Source: Saccostrea echinata
Taxonomy: Eukaryota
DNA: 64,000 nt
NCBI RefSeq assembly: GCF_033153115.1
Contig: NW_026889803.1
Span: 11,780,001-11,844,000, forward strand
Direction of reading: 5' to 3'
Positions 22,963-64,000 of the stretch are shown one piece after another; the first letter of the stretch is position 1, and the number at the start of each line of letters is the position of its first letter. Under the pieces are notes generated by a model that was given only the letters and a program-made list of their open reading frames with translations, was not told where the DNA came from and did no database searches. A program made the translations under genes and the position numbers.

Positions 22963-23060
22963 CCGGAAATGGACGGGGGAAGTGCAGTGATATATAATTG
23001 AGAGGCATGTTAGGGACACTGCACCGTGCAGGTCTCCCTGGGTCACAAAACAGAAAGAGA
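22963..23060 (+). promoter_or_regulatory. Core promoter and non-coding exon 1 of the 309-aa Met-rich gene
   Basis: CCGGAAAT 22963-22970, TATATAA 22991-22997, splice donor GTAAGT at 23061. Confidence 0.6.
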
Positions 23061-23326
23061 GTAAGTAATAAGGCACCTGACAAGAATGGCCAAGTTATAA
23101 ATCTTAATTAAATCTATAATTATGTTCACAGAATTCAGTTATGATTTGAAAAGAACCTTAAATGATGCCTTCATTTATTAGATATGCAGGAAAACTATAT
23201 CTATTTAATTTCATAATCTTATCTGTTTAATTTCAATAATTTTATATTAAAATAAATCTATAAATAAAATCTTTAAAAAATTATTTCTATCATTTATTCA
23301 CAATGTATTTTTTTTTTCAGTTGACC

Positions 23327-24952
23327 ATGCATGTCGTTGGTATATTCGCCTTTCTTTGTTTTGCTGGGGCAAATGGCCTAGTGATACGTAAGTCTTAAGT
23401 CAGATAACACTTAAATATACAAGTAAGTTATTTCCAAATTGTATTTGAAAGATATTTATTTGAAAACTGATTTGAAAAGCAGCATTTTTGAAAACTGTGA
23501 TTACTGAACAATTCTTATTGATAACTGTAACATAAAAATAGAAACAGTTTTGAGAAAGAAATTTTCTCATAGGTCTCCTTAATACCTTTTGTTAAAAAGC
23601 TAGAGCATTTAAGCAAACCCAGGTTATTAAATATATCGTTTAGTGAGATTCTTATGAATTACTAAGTATTGATAGACTATATTTATTGTGTTTGATACGA
23701 AAAAGGAATTGAAAGAAAAGACATTAAGAAACATGAACATATATAAATATTTACAATTTCTTTTATTATTCTTCAACTAAATTAACATATAAATTTCTAA
23801 GATCCAAATGGCCAAGGAACCCCCACAACTGTCGTTAAGTCCCTGAATGGGGAAACAGTTATGCAATCCGGACCTCCAATCACCCATCCAGAGCAATCCA
23901 GACAAAATGAGAACCAATTCGTCAGAGACCCAACCATATTTAATCCTAAGAGATCCAGACTTAATTCAATTCAAACTGATCCAACGAATGCAATGATGAA
24001 CAACATGGTTCGAATGATGAACCCAATGGCACCTGAGACTATTCGACAGGAACAAAAGCCTTCCATGTCTGACAGGTCAAAGATGATGATGAATATGATA
24101 AAAAATATGCCTAACATGGCAAGTGTGATGGGAGATAGAACAGCAATGGCCGATCTTATGAATGCGATGTCATCAGCATCTGAGATAATGGCCAAAATGC
24201 AGAACAATATGAAAATGAATCAAGCCAGAAAATCTAATGTGCAGTCTCCGTATGAAACAGACTACTATATGCCCATCATGACGAATAAGATGACAAATAT
24301 GCCCACAATGGTTTCTAATGACATGATGAAAAATGCACCCTTCATGCCTCCTGCTTCTGAAATGATGGGAAATATGCCCTCCATGCCCCCTGCTGCTGAA
24401 ATGATGACAAATGTTCCCTCCATGCCCTCTGCTGCTGAAATGATGACAAATGTGCCCTCCATGCCCTCTGCTGCTGAAAAGATGACAATTATATCCTCTA
24501 TGCCCCCTGCTGCTGAAATGATGACGAATATGCCTTCCATGCCCAATATGCCTCCTGCTGCTGAAATGATAATGCAAAAGGGCCAAATGTCTGATATTAT
24601 GTCTAAAGTATCCCAAGTACCTTTCGGTATTAAAATGATGGGATTCAGTCCACAACAACGCAGTAAGTACAACTACTTCTGTTTGTGATAATTCTTGTAT
24701 ATATTTTTTTCTAATTTGATTGTTGTAGATCAAATAATATCGGCATAATATTCAATATAATTTACACAAATTGAACACTAGTATATAATTATAGCCTTGT
24801 GACAAACAATTCTTACAAATCATTATCGAAAGCTTAAAGACAATGATTCCGTCATCTGAGCGTTAAGATAGTAGGGAAATCACACAGATAATCTTCATTT
24901 TTATATTAATGTTGTTTACATCTTAGTTTTTTCCTCTATTTCAGGATATTAA
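23327..24952 (+). CDS. Secreted Met/Pro-rich repeat protein, ~309 aa
   Basis: Exons 23327-23387 (signal peptide MHVVGIFAFLCFAGANG), 23802-24662, 24945-24952 (ends QQRRY*). About six 13-aa repeats MP(P/S)AAEMMTN(V/M)PS at ~24343-24570. Confidence 0.8.
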
Positions 24953-25546
24953 GATGCTAGAATTATATTGTCCACATGCTACATGTATCTATTCACTGAA
25001 AACAGCCTGGATATTTTTCAATTCTTATTTTCTGTTTTTGCAATTTTATCTACATGATTATACTTAAAGATGTGTTACAAAGAAAACAGAGTAATTCAAT
25101 ATCTGACATGTCTTTTTACCATTTCCAATTGTATTACTTGTAACATCCCGATCTGAGACGATTCATACTGTAAATGTATAAAAATGTATAATAACATTCT
25201 AACTCGATATTTTCATTCAAACATTAAAACACCTTAAAATTCTAGGAAAACTTATTCGTATCTGATTTTTTCTTCTTCTTTTTTTTGTTTTTGTTTTTTT
25301 TTTTTTTGTTTTTTTTTTGTTTTTTGTTTTGTTTTGCTTTTTAATGTAATGTCAGAGTGTTCAAGGAGAGAAGCTATTTCATAAATCACATTGTAAACTG
25401 ACATACAGACATATATATATTTAATGTGTATTTATAAAGAGAAAAGAACTACTACAATTAATAGTAAGAAAGTTAAACTTCAAAATTATCATAATTACAT
25501 CAATTTCGTTTGACATCATATTTCAGGTAAAGAAATCAAAAACTTT

Positions 25547-26296
25547 TAGGGATGGTAATCGAATAGAGAATTGGCAATCGGTTAACTACAAGACGTTCCG
25601 ATCGATTAACCGGTTAATCGTATCAAAATACTTCTTGAAATTTTTAAGTAAGCTATATTCCTCTATTGAAGTAAGTTCTTTTCGTATATACAAGCAGACT
25701 GAAAAAGAAGTTAACTTAGTATCATTCTATTTATGCTTGATTCAAAAAACACTATAAATATTTCATTTAAATTTCAGTGGACAAGAAATTATTTTTAGAA
25801 TGCTGTGAAACATGCCTGAGATATCAGAGACATTGACAATTTTTCAGACCAGATGTTACACAAGTTCATTCTGCATTGTGACCAAAAATCAAATCAAGTC
25901 TTACATCACTAAGATTTACAATGCTTGTTTAATATAATTTCGTAGACAACTGCATAGGAAAGATTGGTTAAGATACACATTTTAATCTGTTCACAGTAAT
26001 CGTTGGTGATTTAATTAATATCATTCAAGAAATACAGGACAGACTGGGTAACGAAATGGTTTTCAACATTATCAATTACTTCAAAATCTGACCAGTTACC
26101 CACATGATTTTAATTACCTCCGAATTTATGTCAACATCAACATATCAAAGGGTTTTTTAAAGTTAAAATTGAATTTTATGGAAATTGCGTTCAACTTTAA
26201 ACATTTTTTTTTCAACAAACCGATTACAGATTTTCCAACCGATTACCATTGTGTCGACCGAGTAACCGGTTAACCGATTATAGATTGCCATCCCTA
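25547..26296. mobile_element. hAT-like MITE
   Basis: TIR TAGGGATGGTAATC / GATTGCCATCCCTA; subterminal AACCGGTTAA and AACCGATT repeats; only an imperfect TSD (AAACTTTT/ATACTTTT). Confidence 0.7.
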
Positions 26297-26610
26297 ATAC
26301 TTTTAAAATCTTTCACTGGAAAGTTTGAAACGGCCACCATAATTGAATGCGCATAGCGAGAAAGTGTTTCTTTCTTTTGAGACTTTTTAATATCTCTAGA
26401 ATCAGAGACCTGCAATAGAAAAAGATGAAATCTCCCAAAGCATGCTTTATACAGATGATTTCAAAATTTCAAAGCAAAGAGAAAAAAAATTCATATGAAT
26501 CTTTTGCATACCATAGTCTGTTGAAGAGAAGTAAGAAAAAATGGCTGTTAAAACATTTGACTTTATTGATATTGTTTGCAGAACAATAAAGTGAAAATGT
26601 TGACTACCAG

Positions 26611-28304
26611 AGGCCCGTTTCACAAAGCTAACTTAGGAATAAGTTATATCTTAAGACAGAACTTTTTCCTAAGTTCATTACTTATCCGTTTCACTTACCT
26701 CGTCTTATCTTAGGATATTCCTAAGTTATGTCGTAACTTTATGACAAGCAAATCAATGACTTAAAAAGATATTAAATATGACGGCTGTAGATACATGAAC
26801 AAGGATTCTTACAGAGAGATACTGTGTGTATTCCTATAAAGAAAAACTCCAAAGGACGACTAGTATATGAATGATTGTGATCCCTTCAGGTTATAACTGC
26901 TTTACTTTGTATGTAATACATGTAGCTAAGAAAGGGATTTTAGAATTGTAAGAGATGTGTCTGTATCACTAGGCAAAATTAACCCAAGGTATATAAAAAC
27001 GTCCATTGATAAAACTGGAACTACAAATTCATTGCTCTTATAGAATGTTTGATTTCTCAAGAATTCGTGGATTTTCCAATGTAACTACGAAATAGACAGT
27101 ACACATGTTGGATTAATTTCCCATCATTTAAAGAGCACGATAAAACTGATTGTATCTTTTCTCCCCTGGGAGGGAGGAGGCGTTGAAGTGCAAGACTTTG
27201 ACTTTTCCCCTCTGTTTCCGTTACAGAATATTAGGTCCCATTGTCCCTTTTTGGGCTGATTTGTCACGGTATAATTATGCATTGAGATGATAGTATATTT
27301 CCTTTTTTCAACTTTTTCTACTACTGTAAATCACTTTTTATTCGAAAGAATTTTGTTTTCGCGAATATTTTATTCATGTGTATACTTTTACTGTAGAGTA
27401 TTATATAATACAATAACCTCAGCTAACGAAAATTTTGTCTCGCTTATTAATGGCAGATAGCTATCTCGAGTAAAAAAGGTGTCGCGAAAATATAGTGATC
27501 TACAGTAGTATTGTTATTTCCACAGTTGCGAATTTGGAATTTCTTTTCTATCGAAAAATTCTTATCTTAAATATGCGAGATAGTCTTACACGGTAAATAT
27601 GCACAACTACATGTAGCATGGAGCACTCATTCGAGAAGAAATGAAAAAGGCCTCTGTTCGATTGCTAGCCCTTCGAAGCAATCGTTTTAAATTTATTCCA
27701 TTTACTAATTAAAACGGTACTAGTAGAAATATATAAAGTAGGGAAAGAATAAAAAAAAAAAAACAATTGCAAAACCTCAGATACCTTATACAGAGCAAAA
27801 TAAAAGGCAAACATATATCAACACAAAGAAATTTTTTTTAAAAATACATGTCTTGTGACCCGGGGGGGGGGGGTCATGTGTTTGTGAGTGTGTGTGGTGT
27901 GTGTGTGAGGGCGTGTGTGCTTATTATTTCAAGCAGGAAACTCGTCAAACTTAAACCATACTTCTGTCCAAGTCTTTTGAATGTGGTGGGTAACCCCTAA
28001 CCTCCCGCCCCTCCCCTTTTCAATAAAGCTGAAATTTTTTTCATTACTTCAAATAACCCGACTCAAACTAAAGATTTTTCTCATACTGACATCCTCCAAA
28101 CAGTATGCTGAGAATTGTAGATAGAATGGAGAAGTTATTTCATTAGTCCGTAAACAACATAAGAACTGTCTTAGGATAAATTTAAGTTAAGAATGTTTTG
28201 TGAAACAGCTGTGGCAAATCTTAGGAACTTCCTAAGTTATAGCTTAGGCATATCTTAAGTTATGTCTTACAACATATCTTAGGAAAACTTTGTGAAACAG
28301 GCCC
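26611..28304 (+). mobile_element. Decayed PIF/Harbinger element
   Basis: TIR GGCCCGTTTCACAAAG / CTTTGTGAAACAGGCC, 3-bp CAG TSD, subterminal CTTAGG/CCTAAG repeats; frameshifted transposase remnant GFSNV..IDSTHV at 27069-27110 (cf. Harbinger IDGTH motif). Confidence 0.7.
27322..27507. mobile_element. Tc1/mariner-type MITE nested in the Harbinger relic
   Basis: TACTGTAAATCACT ... AGTGATCTACAGTA ends, TA-flanked. Confidence 0.65.
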
Positions 28305-41489: not shown

Positions 41490-42632
41490 AATTTCAACAA
41501 ACAAAATAGAGGGAACTTTAAAAATTAACGTCACAGAGTTTGAATAGACGAATGTTAACCTTTACATCAACACGTCTCTGAAAGGACTTATGAATATATG
41601 TAAAACTACAAATAAGGAAAACAACACGTGAGCTCAAATAAAGTCTTTAATTATAACAAAAAAAAACCGCTGGGCAAACAATGCATTGTTCTCTTTAGAG
41701 AGAGCCTTCTGAACGGTACAATAAAAGTACTACAAGTCTACAAGCCTAACACCAGCAAGGATTTTGTCTTTTTCGGGCCACTTCTCAATGTTTGCAGTTA
41801 TCATTATTATTATTTTATGATGTCTATATTTTCCCTACTTGTGGTCATTTTTAGTTCAACTTCCTTTTTTTTCATTTTTTTCGTGAGAATTTTCCTTCGA
41901 TTAAAGAAACGAAATGCATAAATTTTCTGACATCGTATAACCAGTTTGACATTTAGTGTTCCAACTTCCATTTGAACATTGAAAAGTACTTGTTATTTCA
42001 CAAAGTTTGTGAATATTTCAAAACTGTCCATTTAATTTGTGAAGTTCATAAAAACTTATTTTCTACAAATTTTGATCCAAGTTTGTTTAAAATTCTTTTC
42101 TGAAATTTTCGGAGATTGAAAGTTGTTCAAGCTTTATGCACTGTGTCTTACTCATTAAGTTTTCATAGGTATCCTAAGAAAATCTGTGTTGTTTTACAAA
42201 ATCCAACCAAAATATAATACTTATATTCAATAGATACAGATGAAATTTTTTCTATGTATTATTTACACACTTGTTTAAAAAAAGAAGAAGAAACACAAAA
42301 CAAACAAAACAAAATCAGATTGATTTTATACTTAGTATTTAGTAGAATCATATTTTGTTTGATATATCAAATCATAGGACTTTAATGAGATGCGTTTTAA
42401 TTGAATTGGGAGATATGGGGGCGATTTAATAAGACAAAAAGTTTTTTCTGAAAGTTGCATAGACGATAACAAGTAAATGCTGATTTTGCAATCTTAATGA
42501 ATTTTCTTTCATATTTGATTTGCTTAAAAATGTTATTACAAACGATTAAAAGTGCTAGAAAGTGGTGCATGTGACGTGTATTGAAATTCAAAGAGAGAGG
42601 CGTATAAGGTCTTGTTGGAGAGTTATAAAACA

Positions 42633-45450
42633 ATGTTAAGGTGTGCCTTTACACGACCCACGCTATGCATCAAAACATTTTTTTGGTCCTAAAAATAAAA
42701 TGTGGAAGTCAAAACATACATTATATCATGTTTGACATCTAATACATTGACCATAATAATCATCTGACAATTTAATACCGCAGGAAAAAGAAATCAATCA
42801 AAGAAATCCTTGCAGTACATCTTCTTTCATTTATTCGGATTTATTGGTTCTTTAACAGTTCATTTCTCTTGTTTAGGGTGCGTGGAATTTCCGTTATATT
42901 CATGATATTCATTCAGATGGCTATTTTTCATGGAAATCTAAGTACATGCAGGAAACAAAAATTAAATATGCATCCAACATAAGTAAAAGTTTGTTTAGTT
43001 TATCAAAACTGTATTACAATTTTATACAGATATGAGGGTGAAACGTCCTACACTCTCTTCTGAGATTTGCAATAACCCTACCCACTCTACGCACCCCTTG
43101 TTGTTCCTTGGTGAAAGAATCTGATACTAATATATATTCTAGTGTAAGTTCACACAAGCATGACAGAAGAAATGATAAACAAGCATAAATACACAGACTT
43201 ACCAGTGTTCATTGTTTCTATAGTCTGTGAATCCCCTGTAGAAAGGAACATCATTTTCAAGCATGTTTTCTTGATACAATTCTTAATCTATTCCAATAAT
43301 ATTTCTTTCATGTAATAATACATCCAAGAAATTTGTTTGAACTTACCCTATTTTTTATCACAGTAGGGCCAATAAAATATAAATACTCTTTTTTCATTTA
43401 CAAACAAGCCTTTGTATCTTTGTTCCACCTACTGACAAAGAAATATTAATTCGACAATATATAATTCTTTTAATTCAATTCTAAAATTCATTAATTTTAT
43501 ACACTCAATGCAATTTTACGATGATTTTAATACATATGCCTGAATTTGCGCAAAGCAAAGAGAAAACTTTTGAAACAATTTACAGATATTATAAAAACTA
43601 TGCAAATTCATCGTTCAAATTTCCAAATTTTTTTTTGCTCAAGTTGTTTGTTTCTAATTCTTTTTTGTTATGTTTTATTTTTTTGAATTAGCGACAAATT
43701 TTTGCCACTGCTGCACTCTGCTCTGTCTGTCTGGTATCATAGGGAAAAAAAAATCATATATTGTAATGACAGTATTTTAACAACATAAAAACTTATGACT
43801 TTTCAACTTTATATACAACTATTCCCCACGATAAATTAAAGTCCAGACTTTCCGACATCGTTGACAGCTGCTTTTTCAATAAGAATGGAACTCGTAAATT
43901 TACTTACCTTGTCATTAGTCATTTGCAAAATTACTTTGTTAAAAAGCAATCTGTTTGTACACACAAGTACTCTGAAGTTGACATTAAAAAGATGCTCGAG
44001 TCTCTGATTGACAATATCTATGTGGTTTTTTGGAGACCAGGTCTTCCAACAATCTATTGGAATTCCCATGGGTACCAATTGCTCCCCGTTATTAGCAGAC
44101 TTATTTTTTGTATTCATATGAAGCAGAATTTGTTAAAATATCTTTTACGTGAAAAGAAGAAAACACTTGCTGTGGCCTTCAACTCGGCATTTAGATATAT
44201 CGACGACGTATTGTCAATTAACAATGGTTATTTCCATTCTTATGTCGACACGATATATCCCGGTGAGCTTGAGATAAAAGATACTACAGAGTCTGACACA
44301 TCTGTTTCATATTTGGATATTTTATTAGAAATAGACGTTAAAGGTAATCTAACAACAAAGCTTTATGATAAACGTGATGACTTTAACTTTTCAATAGTCA
44401 ACTTCCCTTACCTATGCAGCAATATACCCTTATCACCTGTATACGGGGTTTATATCTCTCAGTTGATTCTATACACAAGAGCATGCTCTACGTATGAACA
44501 ATTTCTAAAACGAGATAAATTATTGACAAACAAGTTGATGAAACAAGAATATCAGCAGTCTCGTATAAAGTCATCATTTCGTAAGTTCTATGGTCGATAC
44601 AATGACCTTGTCAGCAAATACAATCTATCATTAAGTCAAATGCTGACTGACTTTTTTCATACTAATTGTTAGGCCATTTTTTACACACTAAATTGTCGAC
44701 GGATTTCCCCATTATTTCCCGATCATGACAAAGAGCATACCGTGGGAGTGACCGGTCGGCAGGGGATGCTCACTCCTCCATGGCACATGATCCCATGATG
44801 TCTTAGAGGTCCGAGTTTGCTCTGCTCCTATTTTGTAATGTTTGATGGACTTTTGAGCTCGAATACTGTTCGTTATCTCCACATGTTTCATTACCATTTT
44901 AAAAGTTATTTTTATTCGAGTGTTAACAATCTTCCTATTTTTCCAAAGAATGCTTTTATATAAGTTCTTGTAATGCATCTAACTCTCTCAGGAGGTATAA
45001 AAGAAATGAAAAGTATTATTGCATGAGAAAAAAGGGTGGAACATTGATAGAAAAATGGGTAAATGGATAAAACAGGTAATAACTGATAAAGTCAGCAGAC
45101 ATAGACTAGAAAGGAACAAAGTCAGAATATATGGTTCTATGAGGATGTCATCTTTTGGTGACATTATAAACGAAGGGATGGAAGGCAATATGGGCAAGGA
45201 AATGTGATGATGCCCATGGAAATGTTAAGTTTGATATAAGGTAAAAACATGAGGAAAATGAATGATCTTCATAAAGTGATATGATGGCGTTAGATTTACA
45301 TGTATAAGAGATATGGGAAGCATAAAATATAAGCACTTACTTTTGTGGAGAATTTTTTTTACATATGTAATTCCTTCTGGCTTCTGTCTATTCTTCAGTC
45401 TTAGCCGCATTTGTTTAATACAAAACTCACTGCGCTGACCCAATTCATTA
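42633..45450 (+). pseudogene. Pseudogene B of the abductin-like family
   Basis: Promoter homolog at 42633-42790 with no TATTTAAA; exon 1 to 42877; decayed repeat exon 44992-45328 aligning to genes A/C, with stops, frameshifts and donor GT changed to AT; last-exon remnant 45405-45418. Signal exon not found. Interrupted by a PLE. Confidence 0.7.
43778..44892 (+). mobile_element. 5'-truncated Penelope-like (Naiad-type) retroelement
   Basis: ORF 43923-44672 with FRYIDD and LYDKRDDFNFSIVNFP..SNIP..YGVYISQL, stopping after the thumb; frameshifts; family 3' tail. Confidence 0.85.
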
Positions 45451-45755: not shown

Positions 45756-45946
45756 TAAGTCAAAACATACATTTTGTCAGGTTTGACTTGTTATACAACA
45801 AACATAATGATCACCCGACTAATTGGCCACCGGAAAAGGGATAAACCCTCTGCCTATTTAAACCGTTCTCGGTTCGAAATCTATGCAGTGCTTGGTCTCT
45901 CATTTCTCCGGGTTTTTTGTCCGACACTTCATTACCTTTGCTCAGG
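45756..45946 (+). promoter_or_regulatory. Conserved promoter block and non-coding exon 1, gene C
   Basis: Same block as gene A; CCGGAAA 45830, TATTTAAA 45855-45862, donor GTGAGT at 45947. Confidence 0.75.
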
Positions 45947-46392
45947 GTGAGTGGAACATTCAAGTATTTTTATTTGTTATTTTTTAAATTAATTCTTTTA
46001 TAGCCATGTTTTAAAAATGGCATTCACCTTAGAAAACTACATATAGCTCTGATTTACAGTACTTGAAATTGATTTTAATACTTAGTATATACTAACTATT
46101 TTGGAGACCTTTGCCCTGAAAGATTTCATATAATTACACTAATGTGCAACTATTATTATTAATCGTATGGAGGACCTTCAAAATTTAAGTCTCGCGAAAA
46201 GATAAAATGCTAATAAAGCTTCACGAAATGCAATTAATTGATTACTCTATAGGGCAAATTTAAAGTTAAGTTCTGTTTTGAACAAACAATGTTTTGAAGC
46301 AAGAATCTCAAAAGTTTTACCAAAAAATACGTATTCTCAAATAAACATGTTATACATAATTCAAATATCAGTAGTCTAACATTTCTTTTTAG

Positions 46393-47229
46393 ATGGTTTT
46401 CTCTCTCGTTGCCGTTTCTTGCCTTATTGCTGTGGCCAGCGCAGCAGGCTACGGGCCAGGTAATGAAATTTCACTTTGTTATACTTTCTTTGCATATTAA
46501 TTTGGTTTTTTTTTTTCTTTCTTTTTTTTTAAAGACTTAAAGCAGCAACAAAAAATTATAATAAATAAATAAATAAATAAATCTTGCCACCACAACATAG
46601 CTAAACCCTTCTTTTCAGATGTTAAATATAGACACCAATTCATCTAAATAAAATATATTTTTTTATTAGGAGGAGGTATGGGAATGATGAATGGCGGTAT
46701 GGGAGGAGGCATGATGAACGGCGGCATGGGTGGAGGAATGATGAACGGCGGCATGGGAGGAGGAATGATGAACGGCGGCATTGGAGGAGGAATGGGCAAA
46801 ATGATGATGATGATGCCAGCAAATATGGGCATGGGAGGAGGCATGGGCTCCATGATGATGCCATCTTTGGGCGGCATGATGAATGGAGGAATGGGAGGCA
46901 GCATGGGCAAAGGTAGTATGATGATGATGCCAATGGGAATGATGAATATGATGAAAGGTGGAATGGGCGGAAATATGGGTGGAATGAACAGTATGATGAT
47001 GCCAGCCAGCATGGGCGGTATGATGGGCTCTGGAGGTATGGGTGGCATGGGAAGCATGAAATGTAAGTCTTTTGTTTTTATTACCAACTTCAAGATTCAT
47101 TTCTTATTTATCAAATGTCTATCACACTTTTATCCTTGAATGCATTAAAAAAAAATAATAGTTTTGAATGTTTCAGTAATCATATAATCTAATTTATTTT
47201 TTTTCCCTTCTATTACAGCCGCTTATTAG
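46393..47229 (+). CDS. Abductin-like secreted Gly/Met-rich protein C, ~156 aa
   Basis: Exons 46393-46459 (MVFSLVAVSCLIAVASAAGYGP), 46670-47062, 47219-47229 (ends MKSAY*); AATAAA at 47320. Confidence 0.85.
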
Positions 47230-47419
47230 AAAAGAGATTCACTGCATTCATAATTCATCGTAAACAAAAGACCCCGAGGAGTTTTGCCTTTTTCTATGTT
47301 TTAATTAGTGAAAACTAGAAATAAATTAGTGACGCAATCAGTATATTGTTTTATTTGATTGAAGAAGACCAGTGGTTTGGAAAATATAACTTCTTTCAAT
47401 TTCTTTGTATTATAATGTA

Positions 47420-50014: not shown

Positions 50015-51127
50015 AGAGAATTCTTAGTAAATCTGAAATCACAAAATTTTAACGTTCGACTTTTCATCACTTAATTCAACCATTCCCCACGATTAATTAA
50101 AGTCCAGGCTTTTTGACATCATAGACAGCTGCTTTATCAATAAAAATGGAACTCGTACATGTACTTTCCTTGTCAATGGTCATTTGCAAAAATATTTTGT
50201 TAAAAAGCATTCTCACTGTACACACAGGTACTCTGAAGTTAATTTTATAAAGATGCTTGAGTTTCTGATTGACAATATCTATGTAATTTTTGGAGAGCAG
50301 GTCTTTCAACAATCTGTTGGAATTCCCATGGGTACCAATTGCGCCCTCTTGTTAGCAGACCTATTTTTGTAGTTATATGAAGCAAAATTTATTCAAAAAC
50401 CTTAACATGAGAAGAAGAAAACACTTACTGTGGCCTCTCGAAATTTACATATATCGTCGACGTATTATCCATTCATACGTCGACTCGATATATCCCAGTG
50501 AGCTTAAAATAAAAGATACCACAGAGTCTGACACATCTGTTTCATATTTGGATATTATACAAGAAAAAGACCTTAATGGTAACCTAACAACAAAGCTTTA
50601 TGATAAATGTGATGACTTTAACTTTTCAATTGTCAACTTCCCTTACTTATGCAGCAATATACCCTTATCACCTGCATATGGGGTTTTCTCTCCCAGTTGA
50701 TTCGATACGCAAGAGCATGCTTTACGTATGAACAATTTCTAAAAGAGGCAAGCTATTGACAAACAAGTTGATGAAACAACAATATCAACAGTCTCGTTTG
50801 AAGTCATCATTTTGCAAGTTTTATGGTCTATACAATGACTTTGTCAGCAAATACAATCTATCATTAAGTCAAATGTTGAATGGCGTTTTTTATACTAATT
50901 TTTAGGCCATTATTTACACACTACAGTGTCTACGGATTTTTCCTTTTCCCTCGATCATGACAAGGAGCACACAGCGGGTGTGACCGGTCGACAAAGCATG
51001 CTCACTCCTCCATGGCACCTGATCCCACCTCTGATGTTTTTAGAGGTCCGTTTTTGCTCTGCTCCCGCTTTGTATTGTCTAAATGAACTTTAAGCTTGAA
51101 TACTGTTCGTTATCTCTATTTTTCATT
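50015..51127 (+). mobile_element. 5'-truncated, decayed Penelope-like (Naiad-type) retroelement
   Basis: GIPMGTNCALLLADLFL, LYDKCDDFNFSIVNFP, family 3' tail. Confidence 0.85.
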
Positions 51128-52394: not shown

Positions 52395-52586
52395 AAAGTC
52401 GAACACACCTTGTGTCAAGTGTGACGTGAATTACATAAAACATAATGATCACTCGACAAATTCCCCACCGGAAAAAGACCCAATTATCTAACTATTTAAA
52501 CCCATCTTGGTTCGAAGTCCCGGCAGTACTTCTCCTCTCAATTCTTCAATTTCTTCGCAGCCCTCGTTTCAAATCCTTTGCTCAAG
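52395..52586 (+). promoter_or_regulatory. Conserved promoter block and non-coding exon 1, gene D
   Basis: CATAATGATCAC, CCGGAAA 52468, TATTTAAA 52493-52500, GGTTCGAA, GCAGT, donor GTAAGC at 52587. Confidence 0.75.
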
Positions 52587-52984
52587 GTAAGCGTATTTTC
52601 ACTTGGTCTTCTTATTTCAGATACATGCATTTATATTTAAAAAAAAAAGATGGCTGACTTTTAATCAAAATTAAGTATGACTTTAGTGTTAATCATATTA
52701 AAGTTGAATACACATCAATTGAATATTGTTGTACAATGTATTGCTTAACTAATTCCAAGAGAATTACAAGAAACAACATGTAAAAATATGTGCCAAATAC
52801 GCAAAAAGAGAATTTGCAATTTTAAAAAAATGGTATAGATTGCATGAACAAGTGAAAGTGAATAATCTTGTAATTATTTACTTTTATACAGTGTATTTTG
52901 AAGATCTTGTAATTTATTTACTTTTATATAGTTTGTTTTTATATAGTGTGTTTTAAAGATGTCGCATATTATTCCATATTTCAG

Positions 52985-53768
52985 ATGTCTTTCTCTTTTG
53001 TAACCGTTCTTTCTCTAATCGTTGTGGCTAATGCAGCATACTACGGACCAGGTAATTAACAAATGAAAATTAAAGATAAAATTTAACTTTCATTTTCTCA
53101 ACTACTTTTGTTTACTTTTCAAAACCTATTAATGAAAATGTTTAAACAAGGTAAGAAAAATAAATTTCAAATTTAATCCAAATAATTCGTTCATTTTTTC
53201 CATTCTTACAACATTTACATTAACAATATGAAATATGTGAAACAAATTATTTATTTGTAAACTTTTTTTGCTAACAAATACTTACTTTTAAAGGAGGAAT
53301 GAGTAAAATGGGCGGTGGCATGGGCGGAGGTATGATGTCCAGTGGCATGGGCGGCGGCATGGGCAGAATGATGATGGGAATGGGCGGAGGAGGTATGGGC
53401 GGCATGGGAGGAATGAAGGGTATGATGATGCCCGGTAACATGGGCGGTATGATGGGCGGCGGAGGAATGGGCGGCATGGGAGGAATGGGCGGCATGGGAG
53501 GAATGGGCGGTATGAAATGTAAGTTCATTTGATTCACTACCACAACGATTTCACCACATTTCATTTAAATTTTTCCTTGTTCATGAAATATTTGCAATAA
53601 GCAAGATGTTTACTTTGATTTCATTTTCCCCCTTTTAATGTAAAATGTCTTAATCTCTGTATTCATAAAGCAAGTATGTCTAATACTAGTATTGATATAT
53701 TTTTATTTTAAAGAATTTTAAAATATCATTTTACTTTTTATTTCCTTACAGCTGCCTATTATGGATAA
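52985..53768 (+). CDS. Abductin-like secreted Gly/Met-rich protein D, ~102 aa
   Basis: Exons 52985-53051 (MSFSFVTVLSLIVVANAAYYGP), 53294-53518 ((GGM)n), 53752-53768 (ends MKSAYYG*); AATAAA at 53848. Confidence 0.85.
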
Positions 53769-54833
53769 GAATTCGCTGAAGGATTCTGTCTTCATAATCA
53801 AAGAAAGGATTTCCCCCATTGGTGATTTATGCTTCTCTATATCAGAAAATAAAAGAGATTCTATTTTATGCAGTTTTATTTATTTATATTTTGACAAAGT
53901 CTTCTTTGCATTAAAAGGATTATTCGAACTTGCGAAAGCAATGAAAAATGCTATATACAATAAACATCAGTGTAATGATCACATTTATGAACTATATACT
54001 AGTAGAAAGCATATTTTGCTCAAGGAAAAGGTTCATACTAATGGTTGTTTTTAATTAATTTTTTCTGAACAGTGAAAAAAAAAAGATTCTCTTGCACCCC
54101 AAACAATTCTTCACATCATTGTTTTTAGTGCTACATTCTCTATATGTTTTCTCTATAAGATGAGCTATTTTACTTCTAAAATGTGATGAACATTTAACTG
54201 CCCTATTCAATTTTATGTTTGCATTTCATTTAATTTTGATATCAAAGTCTCAAGTTAATCAAGTTGTATATTTAATGTTATTCCAAGACAATGTGATATA
54301 CTGGTATACACTCAGGCAGATTTGTTCTTAAAATAATTGAAAATTATCTCTATGAAAGTTTACTAAAAATTACATTAAAACGGATATCTATTTTCTAAAT
54401 GAATATAAACTCAATCAAGACCTAATCAGTGTACTGGAGTCTAGGGCAATGTTCTTTTCAGTTACAAAAAGGGCACATTACCTGGGGTTTCCAAATTTTT
54501 TGAGTACATAAGAATATATAGGAAAACTTCATATAAACTTTTCAAGAACAGGGATAATTTTTTCAAATCAATATGGAAGCATCATTTGAAAGCGAATTAT
54601 TGAATTCGTTAACTTATCATGAAAGGTAGATTTAATTTACTCAACCTTTCACCCGGAAAGTCAGGTGCATCCATAGAATGATTTGAAAATAATAGGAGCA
54701 ACCAAAGATATCTCCCTTAAGTAATACCTAAAGAAAAGTACACCCTGAATAGAATCTTAAAGGGGTCATTTTACGGGTGTTATTTTTCTTCAGTATGCTG
54801 TACAGATTTTAAGTGTGATGCTTCTTTTTCTAC

Positions 54834-55187: not shown

Positions 55188-55778
55188 TCTTTTTCTACAT
55201 ACCCGGGTCAGTTTTTATTGTTATACTTTCTTGTTAATAGTCAAATTTGATTGGTTTAAAAACATTTGTTTGTATAAAGGTACTGTTACCCTAACACGTG
55301 CGTAAACCACGCACTCCGGGTAACATTTAATAGCAACGGTTTACAATGCATGACGACTGGTAACAGTATAAAAATTGTTAATTACGCAGAATGTCTGAGC
55401 GTACGTTTCACTGTGGCTTTTTTTCCTTTTAAATGCATGCTAAATACATTCAGTATAACAAAAAAATATTACATGTTTATTTAAGACGACATGTGAAATT
55501 GTTATCCCTTGAAAATTAAACCATTGCAACATCAAGCCTCGATCAGCAATTACAATTTCACATTCTAATGCAATTGTTTTGAAAAACACTTTTTGATTGG
55601 GTGATACACTAACGTTTGAGGCAGTAAAACAAGCATTAACGAGAATGAAATCTTTTCATTGTGACGTCATAGTAGAGCGACGCAAAAACACAATGCTCCA
55701 TGACGTATTCTATATAACAAATCTCAACAAAATAAGACATGGGCGTCAAACAAAATGCATATATTGCATTAGAATGGT

Positions 55779-55944
55779 AATAACTATCTTCTAATTTGGT
55801 ATTTGCGACCGTTAATGCTGATTTAACGGTCGCATCGCAAACATCCGTTTTACCGGCTCCGCTTACGCGTCGCCGGTAAAACTCAGTTTGCGACCGTTAA
55901 ATTAGCATTAACGGTCACAAATACCAAATTAGAAGATAGTTATT
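55779..55944. repeat. Near-perfect ~166-bp palindrome (fold-back element end or MITE)
   Basis: AATAACTATCTTCTAATTTGGTATTTG..GACCGTTAATGCT.. mirrored by ..AGCATTAACGGTC..CAAATACCAAATTAGAAGATAGTTATT, with an inner GTTTTACCGGC/GCCGGTAAAAC stem. Confidence 0.85.
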
Positions 55945-56217
55945 CCCTAAACATACCCTAAAAACATGTAAAATTTAATAATGTAGAATAATGACCAGGG
56001 GTCGTTTATTGACATCGAATATTCGACTAAGGTCATTATTTGTCTTTGAACCAGCGTATGTCGCGTACCAACTTTGCAATCCAAGGGTTTCTGATCCGAA
56101 CTCAATATCTTCACAAGCTAAGGTTCTTTTTTACAACAGGGTCGCGAAGATGTTCGAAAACTGGTTTTGGCAAACATTGGGCCTTGCACTGCAGAGTACA
56201 TTTTTTTTTTAATTTTC

Positions 56218-56218
<1 letters not shown>

Positions 56219-56268
<50 letters not shown>
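56219..56268. repeat. (TTA)n microsatellite
   Basis: About 16 perfect TTA units. Confidence 0.95.
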
Positions 56269-57019
56269 TCTTAAATATTTATTTTTTGTCTTTAATTTTT
56301 TAATTGATTTATTTTTTCTGCTGATAGAATTCTCATTCTGTTTTAACAAGTTCAGGACTTTTTTTATTTAAGTTTTTGCAGGAAATAAATTAATAAGGGC
56401 CTCTGTCTTCTCTCCAATTCTACTTATAATTCTGTTGTGTTTGCACGTGATTTCATTACATAAAAATTGTTTTGATTCTTTCAGTTGTTCAAAAACTTCG
56501 TGTACACTGTATAATTTATGAATAGTCTTAAAATATGATACATCGAAATATTCCGGCCAAAACCAAAAATATCACCCTCTATAGATAACATATCATATAA
56601 TTTTTTCGATTAAAAAAGATCGAAGATTGTTGTAACTTTGGAAACAGAAATTCCATCCAATATTCTCTATGCTGCAGTAAGGCTTGGAGGATAAATTTCT
56701 TTCTTAAACTTAATTATGATGGAAATAAAAACTAATTTGTATCACTCTTATGACTGTATATGCAATTTGTCTCTCCTGTAATGGTAAAAGTAAGACAGCG
56801 TCCACATTTTTTTTAAATTGCATCTTGAACACAGGATGAATATGCATTTTTTGCTTCTGTAGACCACATGTTCGTGTTTCACACAAACCACTCAAATAAA
56901 CCGCCTGGCTGCGATTTAGAGTATCTCTTCCCCACAGATATGGTAATTCCCAGCCCCCAAAGAAAGGACAGTTATCAATAAGTGTTTTCAAGACCTTGCT
57001 TATACTTGCACTCTGTTAT

Positions 57020-57270
57020 GATGAAATATGAAGATAACGAACAGTAATCAAGCTGAAAAATCATTGGAACAATACAACTGGGAGCAGAGCAAATACAGAC
57101 CTCTAAAAAAGTCAAAGGTTGGGTCAGGTTTCATGGGGGAGTAAGCATCCCCTGTCGACCGGTTTCATCCGCCGTGTGCTCCTTATCATGATCGGGAAAA
57201 CGGAAAAATGGCCTAACAATTTGTGTGAAAAAGGTCAGTCAACATTTGACTTAACGATATGCTGTATTTG

Positions 57271-57307
<37 letters not shown>

Positions 57308-59235
57308 CCATTGTATCGACCATAGAATTTGCAAAATGTTGACTTTAAAAGAGACTGTTGATATCCTAGTATAATCAACTTATTTGTCGATAGCTTGCCT
57401 CGTTTTAGAAAATGTTCATATGTAGAACACTTTCTTGCGTATCAAATCAACTGGGATACATAAACTCCATAGGTAGGTAATAATGGTATATTGCTACATA
57501 GATAATAAAAGTTGAAGTCATCATGTTTATCATGAAGTTTTGTTGTTTTTTTTGCCATCAATATCTTTCTCTAATAAAATATCCAAATATGAAACAGATG
57601 TGTCGGACTCCTCGGTGTCTTTAATTTTGAGTTCAATGGGATATATCGAATCAACGTGGAAATGAATATGAATACTCATGTCGAATTGAAGGCCACAGCA
57701 AGATACTTCTTTTCGTATAGGAATTTTTAATAAATTCTGCTTAACAAGAGTACAAAATAGGGTCTGCTAGTAACGGAGCGCAATTAGTACCCACAGGTAT
57801 TCCAACAGATTGTTTTAAGACTTGATCTTCAAAAACTACATAACATATTGTCAATCAGAAACCGAGGCACCTTTTTAATATCAACTTCGGAGTACTTGTT
57901 TGTAGTATCAGAATGTTGAATTTTTAACAAAATAATTTGGCAGATGACTAATAACAAAGTATGCTTATTTACGATTTCCATTTTTGTTGAAAAAGCAGTT
58001 GTCTTTGATGTCAAAAAGCCTGGACTTTAATTTATTGTAGGGAATGGTTATATTAAAAAAAGTTAAAAAGTCGTATGTTTTGATATTATTGATTTTGGTA
58101 AAATTTTGTGATTCAATTTTTCCAAAAGTTCCTTGGAGTTTTTTTAGTTTCTACATCCGATTAACACCACTTCTTAAATATGTTGTTGTACAGTACTCCT
58201 GAAGTTTCTCCTTCACTACTGTTAATATTTTGTCGAGGAGTAAAGAAAGATGTATGTTAGAACATTTACTAGAACCCGCTATGTATCTTTATTTCTAAAG
58301 ATTTTTACGTAGTTTAGGAATCCTTTATAAGTAAGGTTATTCAAATTCAATTTGATTGTTGGGAATATTAAAAATATTTAAAACTGACATATCATTTTGA
58401 AGTATATCCTCCCTAGAAAGGAAATTATTAGTATACTTTGGATTACCACTTGCAAAATTAAATCCAAGTTCCTCTAAAATACAATTATAATAATAAGCCA
58501 TGCAAACAAAGACAATGCTATTACCTGCTTTGTCAGCTGAGATCAGTACATATTGATCGTGTGGTGTATCTAATTCCTTTTTCACTTCTGAATTATTGAA
58601 GACAGAAGGATAGATGGTTTTCATATCAATCTGATACTTTTAATCCATTCTGACAAAGTATCAAAGTCATCTTTTTCATATTTGGCCTATCGCCTGGAGT
58701 AATTTTCGACAGAATTCATAATATTTGAAATTTGACGCCAGTTTAAAGATTGGGGTTCCCAAACTTTTGGTCCTTTTAAAAAGGTGATTTAAGGTCCTCA
58801 TTATTTACTATTTTCAAGTCACCAGTAATGACGTGTCCAGAAGGACTATAGTTGTAGGGAGAAGAACATGAACACATAGGAGGATTATGTTTCATGTGTT
58901 CGATATCTAGGCATTGTAGAAGTTATTCTTATTTATTTATTATTTTTTCAATTTATGTATTTTTATTTATTTATTTTATTTTATTTTTTTTTGGGGGGGG
59001 GGTAAATGAAAAATTTAGAAGCAATATTCATTGAATATTTATAGGAAATACAAGGTGTGGACTTCAACTTGAAATATGGTAGAATACAAAACTCTATCCT
59101 TTTGTGATTAAGAATATTACTACTATTTACTGCATCAGTTCCTTGTTGGCAAATTTAAGTCCAAGGCACGAAAGGCTTCTCGAGCAGTATTCCCTTCCGT
59201 AAAATGTGGCGATTTAAAAAGCTTGTGATTAGCAA
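57020..59235 (-). mobile_element. Longer decayed Naiad-type Penelope-like element
   Basis: Minus-strand remnants PPMCSCSSPYNYSPSGHVITGDL (CxC at 58874-58866), ISADKAGNSIVFVC, RT core and family 3' tail near 57020-57200. Confidence 0.8.
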
Positions 59236-59239
59236 TATT

Positions 59240-60573
59240 CGAATATTTTTAATATTCCCAACAACCAACATGAATTTGAATTACCATATCTATATTGGAT
59301 TCCAAAACTTCATAAAAATCCTTACAAATAAAGATACATAGCGGGCTCCAATAAATGTTCTACCAAGCCTCTTTCTTTACTCCTCACTAAAATATTAACA
59401 ATAGTGAATTGGTGTAAATCAGATATGGATACTTAAAAATTCCAAGGAACTTTTGGACCAAAATCAACAACATGAAAATTTACGACTTTTCAACTTTATA
59501 TACAACCATTCCCCACGATAAATTAAAGTCCAGGCTTTTTGATATCACTGACAGCTGCTTTTTCAATAGAAACGGAACTCGAAAATTTACTTACCTTGTC
59601 ATTGGTCATTTGCAAAATTATTTTGCAAAATTCTGATTGTACACACAAGTACTCTGAAGTTGATGTTAAAAAGATGCTTGAGTTTCTGATTGACAATATC
59701 TATATGATTTTTGAAGACCAGGTCTTCCAACAATCTGTTGGAATTCCCATGGATACCAACTGCGCCTCGTTATTAGCAGACCTAATTTTTGTATTCATAT
59801 GAAGCAGAATTTGTTTAAAATCTTATACGTGAAAAGAAGAAAACACTTGCTGTGGCCTTCAACTCGACATTTAGATATATCGACCACGTATTGTCAATTA
59901 ACAATGGTTATTTAAATTCTTCTGTCGATAATACATATCCCAATGAGCCTGAAATAAAAGATCCCACAGAGTCTGATACATCTGTTCTATATTTCAATAT
60001 TTTACTAGAAAAAAAACGTTAATGGTAATCTAACAACCAAGCTTTATGATAAACTTGATGAGTTTAACTTTAATCGTCAACTTCCCTTACTTATGCAGCA
60101 ATATACCTTCATCACCTGCATACGGGGTTTATATCTCTCAGCTGATTCGATACGAAGAGCATCTCTACGTATGAACAATTTCTAAAGTGAGGTATGTTAT
60201 TGACAAACAAGTTGATAAAACAAGAATATCAGCAGTCTCGTTTAAAGTCGTCATTTCGTAAGTTCTATGGTAGATAAAATGACCTTGTCAGCAAATACAA
60301 TTTATCATGAAGTCAAATGTTGACTGACGTTTTTCATACTTATTGTAAGACCATTATGTACACACCGAATTGGCAACGGATATTTCCGTTATTTCCCGAT
60401 CATGACAAAGAACACACGGCGGGTGTGACCGGTCGGCAGGGGATGCTCACTCCTCCATGGCACCTGATCCCACCGCTGATGTTTCAAAGGTCCGTGTTTG
60501 CACTGCTCCAAAATTTGTATTGTTTAAAGGACTTTTGAGCTTGAATACTGTTCGTTATCTCCATACATTTCAT
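59240..60573 (+). mobile_element. Penelope-like (Naiad-type) copy, head-to-head with the previous one
   Basis: LPYLYWIPKLHKNP, GIPMDTNC, FRYIDH, family 3' tail. Confidence 0.85.
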
Positions 60574-61529
60574 TCATAATCACGGATCGATCCCAGCCTG
60601 TGTTCTGATGCAGAAGAATCCAAATATGGACTTTAATCAGTGCTAGTGTGGATTTTGGAATGAGGAAAGCTATTAGTATAGCAAGAAGTTGAATAAACAA
60701 ATCATTGCAATCGGGTGCGCTAACCTAGCAGATTATAATGTCCTTAAAATTATTTTACCACGTAAAAATACTTATAAATATGCGAAATACTGGGGTAAAA
60801 TACATCACAAACATTAAGCCGATCAATGTAGGCTTTATGAAATAACAAGAACTTGAATGATAGCATAGGCATTTAGTTAATGAAAACTAAACGATGATTT
60901 TCTAAGTCATATATAACAGAATGTCGCTTAAAACAATGGATCACTAAAGCAGGTTTGGCTATATAAACCGTTTTAAATGATTTTGCTCATGTCCTTGGCG
61001 GTTGTGAATATTATTGATGATAGTGGAATATTTTATGCCATAATTCTCTAAAAGTATCTCGATAATTAGTTAAAATTTTGTTTACTTCAGAAAATAAACT
61101 ATAAACAAGTTTTCAAAGTTACTAATAAATATAAATGATTTACACCTTTGACATAAGAGAATTTTCTTCAGTCAGATAATCTAGTTTAAATTATGTGCTA
61201 TTTGTTCAAATGTGTATGAATTTAAAAATTTAATTTGAATCACTGTGTACATCAGATTAAAAATTTGCAAAATAAGCAAGAAACACATCTTTATTGTGAA
61301 AAGAGTTGTTCAGAAACTTCAAAGGTTATCCTCCTGAAACTTTTCAGAAATGCAATGACGCATACCTGAAAGTTCATCCGAATTTACATCATAAATAAAA
61401 CATAGTAACATGTGTTTAGGATGTCTAATTTTAACAGTAAATACGTAAAAAAGGCTTTGTTTGTTCAAATACTGTGTGGGATCTAAAGGAACCACCGTGT
61501 ACTCCTGTCAGGTTACCATGTCCAACAAC

Positions 61530-61675
61530 AAAGTCATACACAAATTTTGTCCAATCAACACCTTTGCATCAGGAAATTTATTGTATTATTTAGCTATATA
61601 AACCCATATGGAATGCCATTCCCTACAGAGTTCCATTTCTCCTATTGGAATATTCAGTCTTCCGCTTCACCAAAG
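61530..61675 (+). promoter_or_regulatory. Promoter and non-coding exon 1, gene E
   Basis: AAAGTCATACACAAATTTTGTC, CAGGAAAT 61570, TATATAAA 61595-61602, donor GTAAGT at 61676. Confidence 0.65.
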
Positions 61676-61771
61676 GTAAGTTGATAGAATTGTGCTTTTC
61701 TTTTGCAAATTGGGGAGTACCTACCTATGATACCGTTCTTCACTGTTTCTAAGGATTTCTCTCTGTTTCAG

Positions 61772-62905
61772 ATGGCATCTCTCCTGTGCGCTCTTTCTGC
61801 TGTGTTGGCCGTATCTATGGTCAGTGCAAGAGGTTATGGTCCAGGTTGGTTTCTTTCGATGAACATTTCAATAAAATTAAGTGTCTTCTACGAAATAATA
61901 CTTTACAGCATTGAATGGAGATAAGAGACTTTTTTTCTACTTTTCATCATTGTTTGAATTGTCCATTTTTCTCTATCTAACTGGAACATTTGCTTATTTA
62001 TAGGTGGAATGGGCGGAATGATGTCGGGTGGAATAGGCGGTGGAATGATGTCAATGGGAGGCATAGGATCCATGGGCGGTAGTATGGGAGGCATTGGATC
62101 CATGATGCCAATTAGTAAAATGATGGGAAGCATGGGCGGTATTGGATCTATGGGAAGCATGGGTGGAATTGGATCTATGGGCGGAATTGGATCTATGGGT
62201 GGCATGGGTGGAATTGGATCAATGGGCAGCATGGGTGGAATCGGATCAATGGGAAGCATGGGTGGAATCGGATCTATGGGCGGAATAAGATACATGAAAT
62301 CTATGGGCGGCATTGGATCCATGGGCGGTATTGGATCTATGGGTGGCATGGGATCCATGGGCGGTATTGGATTTATGGGCGGCATGGGATCAATGGGCGG
62401 CATGGGATCAATGGGCGGCATCGGATCCATGGGTGGCATCGGTTCCATGGGCGGTATCGGATCCATGGGTGGCATGGGAGGTAAGTTATCAGGATAAATA
62501 GTATTTGGTATTACTTTCATTCTCATATTCATAATTTGAATTTGTTTACAAGTTGATTTTCTTTAAAGATAAGGAAATCTCAATTAAATAGAAAACAAAA
62601 TTATTTAAATTTGATTTGATAGTTTTGAAATAAATATGATTATTAATATTCTGTAAAAATTTTCATTACAGGCATGGGAATGAAATGTAAGTGTCATTGT
62701 TAATATATCTTTATGCATAATAATTATNNNNNNNNNNNNNNNNNNNNNNNNNNNNNNNNNNNNNNNNNNNNNNNNNNNNNNNNNNNNNNNNNNNNNNNNN
62801 NNNNNNNNNNNNNNNNNNNNNNNNNNNNNNNNNNNNNNNNNNNNNNNNNNNNNNNNNNNNNNNNNNNNNNNNNNNNNNNNNNNNNNNNNNTTAGCTGGAT
62901 ATTAA
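61772..62905 (+). CDS. Abductin-like secreted Gly/Met/Ser-rich protein E, ~191 aa
   Basis: Exons 61772-61844 (MASLLCALSAVLAVSMVSARGYGP), 62004-62480 (GG(I/M)GSM repeats), 62672-62686 (15-nt microexon GMGMK), 62895-62905 (SGY*, just after the gap); AATAAA at 62964. An extra exon inside the gap cannot be excluded. Confidence 0.8.
62728..62890. other. Assembly gap in the last intron of gene E
   Basis: Run of N. Confidence 1.
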
Positions 62906-64000
62906 TACTCTTCAACTCTCAGGGCCACCATAAACCGTTTTCATGTTTATTTTGCTTATATGTAATAAATATTTGCAGTATCAAAATGGATTTTATTTTA
63001 TATATGAACAAACTGTGGCTTAAATTATCAGTTGATGGTGGACCATCGGAAAATTGAATACAAAAAAAAATAGGAAAAACCCTTAATATAATTTTACTCA
63101 GAACAAGTGCAACAAATTCATTCTGTACTTTTGTTAATTTAATCAAAGAGTCATAATAATTTTGACAAACAGCAAAACTACTCTAACTAATTGTGACAAA
63201 TGTAAAATTCACGTTCAGCCCATATTTCATTAATAGAAATTAATTTTTTATATTTCACACAGATAGAGTATGTCATGACCTTAAAGGGAACTGATTTTGG
63301 CAATGATCATGTTGCAAACTTTGCAGTATTGAACAATCAACATGGATTTAAGAACAAGCAATACTTTGAATTCTAATTCTTACGTGTACCAGTTAAATTT
63401 CCAGAAGTATTGAGTTACTTTTAAGAGAGGATAACAGAAGTCGTTTGAAGAGGCCTTCTTCATTTATTCTGATTAATTGTTTTCCAAGTTTTCTCATTAT
63501 GAGGAAATGTAAAAATGTACAGCTAGGTGGCGAAATTTGGGCGCTGTCTCAGAAAAAGCGATAAAGACCATTTGCGTTGAACACAAATAATATGAATCTG
63601 ATGCAACCAAATAGTTAGTAACCTTCAATGAACAAAACTAATATCAGAGGAAACTTTTTCACATTATATGTTTTGAGATCCTGCATGCAAAATCACATCT
63701 GTCTTGTTAACAATTTTACATGGAGGACCACAATTCATTTTACTTTTGTCCTTTTTAAATAAAGTCTGAAGATTGTTTTATTACTAAATTGAAAAAAAAA
63801 TCAATGATTTTATTGAACGACATATGGGTTAATCTTCTAAGAAATAATCTATACTGTAACAACATTACACAAAACAACCAATTTAAGAATTATGTATCTA
63901 TACACATTTTAAAATACGTTCAACCCATTTTATGTACAGTTTAGAATTCTTAATGTTATGTTTAGTTTTGAATCATTCTTAAATAAACAAATTAATTGGT

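Follow-up and report, generated by a model that had tools for sequence, protein, structure and literature searches.

A 64,000-nucleotide (nt) stretch of AT-rich animal DNA from the oyster Saccostrea echinata (contig NW_026889803.1, positions 11,780,001-11,844,000; hereafter the window, whose coordinates we use throughout) carries a tandem cluster of genes for secreted proteins rich in Gly and Met. The cluster is real and is transcribed, as observed for two of its genes. Six long open reading frames (ORFs) whose Met content is 20% or more are found at 23.9-24.7, 30.7-32.9 (minus strand), 37.5-37.9, 46.7-47.1, 53.3-53.5 and 62.0-62.5 kilobases (kb), and the first 22 kb of the window hold no long Met-rich ORF. 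We refer to the corresponding genes as g1 to g6. Exon models were built from canonical GT..AG splice sites and joined only for counts of length and composition, with all searches done exon by exon. These models reproduce the six protein lengths proposed in an initial annotation of the window (309, 765, 160, 156, 102 and 191 amino acids (aa)), and they agree with most of the gene layout described there. The signal exon ends in phase 1 in all six genes; its coding part comprises 61 nt in g1, 67 nt in each of g2-g5 and 73 nt in g6. In five genes (g2-g6) the acceptor AG is immediately followed by the ATG. The coding tails, each with a Tyr, measure 8, 8, 17, 11, 17 and 11 nt in g1 to g6, respectively. 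Two elements of that layout need amendment. A single phase 1-1 repeat exon is found in g1, g3, g4 and g5, but g2 and g6 add a 15-nt phase 1-1 microexon that holds the Met-Lys end, giving them five coding-related exons rather than four (the lengths claimed for both already count the microexon). The non-coding first exon, said to be short, spans at least 126 nt in g2, where it reaches position 33994.

The first gene (g1, 22991-25245, plus strand, predicted 309 aa) has a TATA-like element at 22991, a predicted exon 1 at about 23020-23060, exon 2 at 23321-23387 with its ATG at 23327, exon 3 at 23802-24662 and a tail exon from 24945, the coding part of which (24945-24952) reads Arg-Tyr-stop. Its product contains 18% Met together with Pro, Ser and Asn, includes 21 acidic residues, and is built on a 39-nt repeat that encodes approximately MPPAAEMMTN-VPS. 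The largest gene, g2 (29630-33994, minus strand, 765 aa), runs from exon 1 (33994, or further upstream, to 33869) through the signal exon (33205-33139) and the repeat exon (32920-30713) to a microexon encoding Gly-Pro-Ser-Met-Lys (30600-30586) and a tail reading Tyr-Trp-stop (29732-29725), the last two being predictions from the common ATGAAAT/GTAAG donor; AATAAA at 29726 or 29654 is the candidate poly(A) signal. This product has 25% Met, 25% Gly and 14% Pro, with Pro-rich PAPEP blocks. The last intron of g2 also contains, at 29824-30271, 2.7 copies of a 166-nt unit (90% matches) that resembles a small transposon-derived array.

The remaining four genes lie on the plus strand. The best documented of these is g3 (36587-38167, 160 aa), with a TATA box at 36587, exon 1 at 36616-36681, the signal exon at 36869-36935, the repeat exon at 37501-37899 and the tail exon at 38051-38167 (stop at 38065-38067, AATAAA at 38152); its product is 39% Gly and 34% Met and has a 24-nt repeat encoding MNGGMGGG. 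For g4 (45855-47340, predicted 156 aa) the corresponding features are a TATA box at 45855, exon 1 at about 45884-45946, the signal exon at 46393-46459, the repeat exon at 46670-47062 and a tail from 47219 that reads Ser-Ala-Tyr-stop (AATAAA at 47320), with 40% Gly, 36% Met and a 27-nt repeat encoding MMNGGMGGG. The shortest product is that of g5 (52493-53870, predicted 102 aa), which has a TATA box at 52493, exon 1 at about 52522-52586, the signal exon at 52985-53051, the repeat exon at 53294-53518 and a tail from 53752 reading Ser-Ala-Tyr-Tyr-Gly-stop (AATAAA at 53848); Gly reaches 51% and Met 32%, and the 18-nt repeat encodes GGMGGM. Lastly, g6 (61595-62985, predicted 191 aa) has a TATA box at 61595, exon 1 at about 61624-61675, the signal exon at 61772-61844, the repeat exon at 62004-62480, the microexon at 62672-62686 and a tail exon at 62895-62905 that reads Ser-Gly-Tyr-stop and was assigned by its likeness to the tails of g3-g5 (AATAAA at 62964). 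The composition of g6 is 46% Gly, 23% Met, 15% Ser and 10% Ile, in GGIGSM units. An assembly gap (62728-62890, a run of N) falls within its last intron, between the microexon donor at 62686 and the tail exon. The four nucleotides between gap and tail exon (ttag) are all that shows of the acceptor, no coding frame crosses the gap, and the putative intron measures 208 nt across it, compared with 151-233 nt for the last introns of g3-g5. A 114-aa "ORF" that runs through the gap was rejected as an artefact, the Ns having been translated as X; another stretch of N, at about 11100-11300 and outside the cluster, likewise appears as X in the ORF listing.

Four transcriptome-like sequencing runs from two studies (X1-X4) contain parts of the 30.5-38.2 kb region, and we aligned their contigs on positions 32201-38200. 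We take these runs to be RNA because introns and intergenic DNA are without depth in them, save for transposon-like pieces. Within this 6-kb stretch the predicted splice structures are borne out for all three introns of g3 and for the first two of g2. The g3 contigs, present in all four runs, skip exactly 36682-36868, 36936-37500 and 37900-38050, each bounded by GT..AG; the transcript begins at 36616, 29 nt past the TATTTAAA box, and ends at 38167-38170, beyond the AATAAA, so that the g3 model is confirmed in full. For g2, an X2 contig joins 32673-32919, 33138-33205 and 33869-33994 with CT..AC ends, corresponding to exons 1-3 on the minus strand and confirming the introns at 32921-33138 and 33206-33868. 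The spliced transcripts of both genes have high contig depth. Because X1 also covers g2 exon 3, g2 and g3 transcripts co-occur in the same runs and the two genes are expressed in the same samples.

Some contigs depart from these simple structures. One X4 contig (2174 nt, covering 37617-38200 and beyond) extends 1.7 kb past the g3 poly(A) site, and in a contig of X2 the end of g3 exon 3 (37842) is connected back to the start of exon 1 (36616); we read them as read-through and an assembly artefact, or as something odd. At 34530-34860 and 36053-36105, many contigs of all four runs align at 90-95% likeness with loose ends on both sides, and these are probably expressed repeat copies from elsewhere.

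The proteins of g3-g6 are highly biased in composition. Their mature forms consist of 39-51% Gly and 23-36% Met, with 1-4% Pro, 0-1 acidic residues (Asp plus Glu), four basic residues (Lys plus Arg) each and 0-1 Phe per protein, while Gln is outside the eight commonest residues. Each begins with a hydrophobic segment of 19-22 aa, with small residues at -3/-1, followed by (Ala)-Tyr-Gly-Pro-Gly, so that a Tyr stands at most three residues from the predicted mature start (the cleavage site was placed by eye), and each ends in Lys-Ser-x-Tyr plus at most two residues. A Pfam search found no domain in the cluster proteins, and AlphaFold gave no confident fold, with a mean predicted local distance difference test score (pLDDT) of 54 and a predicted template modelling score (pTM) of 0.21. 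The products of the cluster, which range from small to large, are most likely secreted and intrinsically disordered structural proteins rich in Gly and Met.

To what extent these genes are related to one another has to be read mainly from the parts outside the repeats. As had been noted initially, the repeat units differ by gene, the DNA units being 39 nt in g1, 96, 84 and 21 nt in g2, 24 nt in g3, 27 nt in g4, 18 nt in g5, and 18, 27 and 45 nt in g6. The accompanying statement that kinship shows in gene structure and not in alignable protein holds for most of the repeat bodies, but g3 and g4 do align beyond composition (z = 18 against shuffled sequences), with g5 joining them weakly (z = 3.2). 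The third exons of g3 and g4 are 85% identical and their promoters 80% identical; across g3, g4 and g5, promoters and first exons are 72-80% identical and have in common the boxes ATAATGATCAC and CCACCGGAAAA, and the TATA region (promoter core) of g6 resembles that of g5. Two junction motifs extend the comparison: TAYGGNCCAG/GT ends the signal exon of g3-g6 (TAYGGNCCAGGT, four matches against 0.03 expected), and ATGAAAT/GTRAG ends the coding body of g2-g6 (ATGAAATGTRAG, five matches against 0.06 expected). A longer form of the former, GCA-N6-TAYGGNCCAGGT, has five matches in the entire 923-megabase genome, four of which are g3-g6; we rejected the fifth (on contig C10) as a chance site with neither a signal peptide nor a Met-rich frame.

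As judged from these shared elements, g2-g6 are one family that descends from one ancestor, recognizable by gene structure, by the end of the signal exon, by the C-terminal Lys/Tyr tail and, for g3-g6, by the promoter, and not by the repeats. That ancestor fixed the layout, in which exon 1 is non-coding, the signal exon ends in phase 1 at Tyr-Gly, a single phase 1-1 repeat exon is free to expand, and a Met-Lys end precedes a short tail with Tyr. The repeat exons have lengthened independently, each through recent tandem duplications. For g1, the only tie to g2-g6 is the layout: comparison of g1, and of the three further genes described below, with g2-g6 found no common promoter, signal-exon or tail motif, and their bodies align no better than composition would allow (z at most 2.7). 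Of the proposed co-regulated family, the family part is supported for g2-g6, and g2 and g3 occur in the same RNA runs; g1 shares no more than the layout.

The initial annotation placed a 40-kb cluster at 22963-62970. Six genes do lie there, but the cluster continues past the right end of the window and comprises nine genes over about 68 kb. The additional three, about 5-27 kb beyond the right edge, are Met-rich, have the phase-1 signal-exon layout of the window genes and possess Tyr-bearing ends. They are g7 (L005:5042-6170, window-equivalent 69 kb, plus strand), with a 61-nt signal exon whose ATG follows AG, a 198-nt Met/Pro/Asn exon and a probable tail ending Lys-Tyr; g8 (L010:8336-9410, window-equivalent 82-83 kb, minus strand), with a 79-nt signal exon and 301 aa, of which 22% are Met and 19% Ser, with a Tyr-rich basic stretch at the end; and g9 (L006:5764-6612, window-equivalent 90 kb, minus strand), with a 67-nt signal exon and 239 aa ending in Ser-Tyr-Phe. 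No Met-rich gene was found in the 100 kb leftward of the cluster, which is flanked on the left by a STAND-NTPase-like gene (17.4-20.9 kb) and on the right by RPA1 (from about 94 kb). The left neighbor consists of two intronless long ORFs on the minus strand (17450-20928; 322 and 473 aa). A P-loop occurs in the longer ORF, which also shows weak similarity to Pfam nSTAND3 (E = 5e-6, slightly below the cut-off).

One pseudogene had also been claimed. A decayed copy does exist on the plus strand at 42616-42880, where 68-78% identity to the promoters of g3, g4 and g5 can be traced and the TATA region is deleted, but it is merely a relic of a promoter and exon 1, and the only pseudogene trace that we found; a search downstream for remains of exons 2-4 found none. 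Fragments of a retroelement-like family with the motif ...RYIDDVL... (ORFs at 8561-9055, 43923-44672, 50377-50700 and 59539-59802, plus strand; no Pfam match) are dispersed among the cluster genes, one of them directly after this relic.

Database searches returned a single relative. Among 116 matches obtained with phmmer against 1.84 billion representative proteins, the only true relative is UniProt K1QVH9, an uncharacterized protein of Magallana gigas that aligns with the middle of g2, where the protein is not repetitive (62% identity over 199 aa, E = 8e-29); the others are periodic bacterial or other low-complexity proteins, which we do not consider relatives. K1QVH9 itself is a chimeric and faulty 284-aa model that carries no name or function. 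Its residues 3-191 are the orthologue of the g2 center, and in its last third at least residues 194-231 are antisense to the Met-rich exon of a g1 orthologue, which by this match exists in M. gigas. Since the front of the entry corresponds to g2 and the back to antisense g1, the convergent g1-g2 pair is conserved between the two oyster genera. Homologous-protein searches with g3 exon 3 and the least repetitive part of g2 exon 3 gave no match and are uninformative, as low-complexity competitors filled the candidate lists; the composition correction in HMMER probably removes the signal, the g3 query having missed even g4 in its own genome. The ESM Atlas gave nothing usable (the best score, 0.76, was a bacterial cluster), and a literature search retrieved no paper on genes of this kind in ostreid oysters. 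In the libraries searched the family has in effect no name, its sole relative found there being the mis-modelled M. gigas entry.

To account for this combination of features, we propose, with a probability of about 0.58, that the cluster consists of hinge-ligament genes of the type of scallop abductin and the pearl-oyster ligament protein LMP, most likely expressed by the mantle isthmus, the tissue that secretes the ligament. The initial annotation had already suggested a ligament elastomer. Composition, end design and the Tyr-Gly-Pro junction fit what has been published for abductin and LMP, but the repeats match neither protein, and this is the first of several points that count against our proposal. 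The abductin decapeptide GGFGGMGGGX is missing, the units here being MNGGMGGG, GGM and GGIGSM with hardly any Phe, and the LMP unit (MMMKPD)n is absent from all six genes. Outside the repeats, the likeness to abductin is judged from published descriptions and not by sequence alignment. Because many genes for secreted proteins have a phase-1 signal exon, the link of g1 and g7-g9 to the family is a loose one. In addition, Met-rich regions are common to the insoluble nacre, prism and ligament proteins of Pinctada (PMC7591529).

If the cluster does encode ligament proteins, the isthmus epithelium would secrete chains that start, after removal of the signal peptide, 0-3 residues from Tyr-Gly-Pro-Gly and end in Lys-Ser-x-Tyr, with an uncharged Gly/Met middle that would remain a hydrated random coil. 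The terminal Tyr residues, by forming dityrosine or by reacting through tyrosinase and quinones, and the few Lys, perhaps by Met-Lys sulfilimine bonds, would link these chains end to end. The insoluble, rubber-like network that results would store energy whenever the resilium is compressed by the adductor. Paralogues that differ in their units (MNGGMGGG, GGM, GGIGSM and the PAPEP of g2) may tune stiffness, or may coat aragonite fibres as LMP does.

The most serious competing explanation, which we regard as unlikely but by no means negligible, is that a similar cross-linked Met-rich framework ends up in the layers of the shell (foliated or prismatic calcite, chalk, myostracum) or in the periostracum, or else that the cluster is split, with the Gly/Met genes serving the ligament and the Met/Pro/Ser/Asn genes (g1, g7-g9) the shell. 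The Met-rich regions shared among the insoluble Pinctada proteins suit this explanation, as does the existence of a Met-rich nacre protein, MRNP34; moreover, g1, g8 and g9 are far from g3-g6 in composition. A shell-matrix role, for which the initial annotation had also allowed, is plausible above all for g1, with its many acidic residues. It is harder to maintain for g3-g6, which lack the acidic residues and prominent Gln that mark Pinctada shell-layer proteins; of the proteins described so far, the two ligament proteins come nearest to them in composition and in the design of the ends.

It is considerably less probable that these secreted low-complexity proteins have another role, for example in the larval hinge or shell, in the cement of the attached valve, in mucus, or as antimicrobial peptides rich in Gly. 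Many secretions would agree with a signal peptide and low complexity, and the runs with g2 and g3 may come from any stage or tissue, but Tyr and Lys placed at the ends in this way suggest a solid held together by cross-links, and nine clustered paralogues of widely different lengths suit a composite material more than peptides. We are also not aware of any adhesive, mucus or antimicrobial family in which Met reaches 25-35%. Expanded coding-like microsatellites that are open by chance, an explanation to which the simple, recently expanded repeats might lend some color, are scarcely credible, being already contradicted by the depth of spliced transcripts and opposed by frames, signal peptides, splice phases and tails conserved across six genes and by the orthologue in M. 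gigas.

So far, only single cDNAs or proteins have been described for this kind of material (scallop abductin and Pinctada LMP), and the cross-links of abductin have been proposed. The protein kind is already known, and what is new here are the conserved ends, or "handles", the gene-structure signature and the nine-gene extent. Paralogues that keep the two ends and vary in length (102-765 aa) and repeat chemistry would provide a natural series for the determinants of stiffness and resilience, the conserved terminal Tyr and Lys point to candidate cross-link sites, and the gene structure may serve as a marker to find ligament proteins in other bivalve genomes where the sequences are unalignable. 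More tentatively, and with somewhat less than even odds, scallop abductin, pearl-oyster LMP and the oyster cluster could all belong to one ancient pteriomorph family in which only the handles are conserved and the phase 1-1 middle exon has been repeatedly reinvented by tandem expansion. The handles, equally tentative as a part of this idea, would be the signal exon ending in Tyr-Gly(-Pro), the Met-Lys end and the Tyr tail, acting as cross-linking ends. If this is true, an oyster would build its ligament from spring segments that can be exchanged for one another, with nine genes as the toolkit.

Abductin is the only natural protein rubber described as working in compression (PMC9999432). As far as the source work of Cao, Wang and Bayley (1997) on Argopecten irradians is relayed in later papers, abductin has a 19-aa signal peptide followed by Tyr 20 and a Gly/Met-rich chain of 116 residues that repeats GGFGGMGGGX. 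Gly makes up 58% of it and Pro about 1%, and it includes 14 Met and 3 Lys; both ends bear a Tyr, for which dityrosine has been proposed, and a Met-Lys sulfilimine is a possible further link (PMC9999432, PMC13052691). The oyster proteins have a signal peptide of similar length (~19-22 aa), a Tyr at the mature start, a C-terminal Tyr, a Gly-dominated body with Met among Gly doublets and triplets, very few Lys (3 in abductin, compared with 4 basic residues here) and almost no acidic residues, and g5, at 102 aa and 51% Gly, is the nearest to abductin. However, Met is two to three times higher here (23-36%, as opposed to about 12%) and Gly is lower (39-51%, as opposed to about 58%), the units vary by gene, and g2 is a Pro-rich protein of 765 aa.

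LMP of Pinctada fucata (Suzuki et al. 2019) comes from the insoluble fraction of the ligament, where mass spectrometry detected it, and its printed sequence shows a signal peptide followed by Tyr-Gly-Pro-Arg-Asn-Arg-Gly, as well as a Tyr-bearing tail (PMC7591529 and its Fig. S3). By eye, this junction is the one that reads Tyr-Gly-Pro-Gly in g3-g6 and Tyr-Gly-Arg-Gly-Arg-Asn in g2, the Arg-Asn-Arg-Gly of LMP being like the sequence of g2 there, and both LMP and the oyster proteins combine a Met-rich tandem-repeat body with a C-terminal tail containing Tyr. Nevertheless, the MMMKPD unit is charged and has almost no Gly, whereas the repeats here are uncharged and Gly-rich. LMP is insoluble framework material, as is predicted for the oyster proteins. 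The ligament proteins of Pinctada, unlike its nacre and prism proteins, are without acidic-rich and Gln-rich regions (PMC7591529). The Met-rich insoluble shell proteins NU-5 and MRNP34 of Pinctada and the Gly-rich shematrin and KRMP families are likewise secreted, low-complexity framework proteins encoded by multi-gene families in pteriomorph bivalves, but they have acidic, Gln-rich or Gly/Tyr-rich domains and belong to mineralised layers, and g3-g6 are without such domains. Shematrins end in a basic stretch and Tyr, like g1 (Arg-Arg-Tyr) and g8 (Lys-Lys-Tyr...Tyr). Compared in this way, the oyster genes are not members of either ligament family by repeat consensus; in composition and in the design of their ends they are like abductin, and with LMP they have a single junction motif in common.

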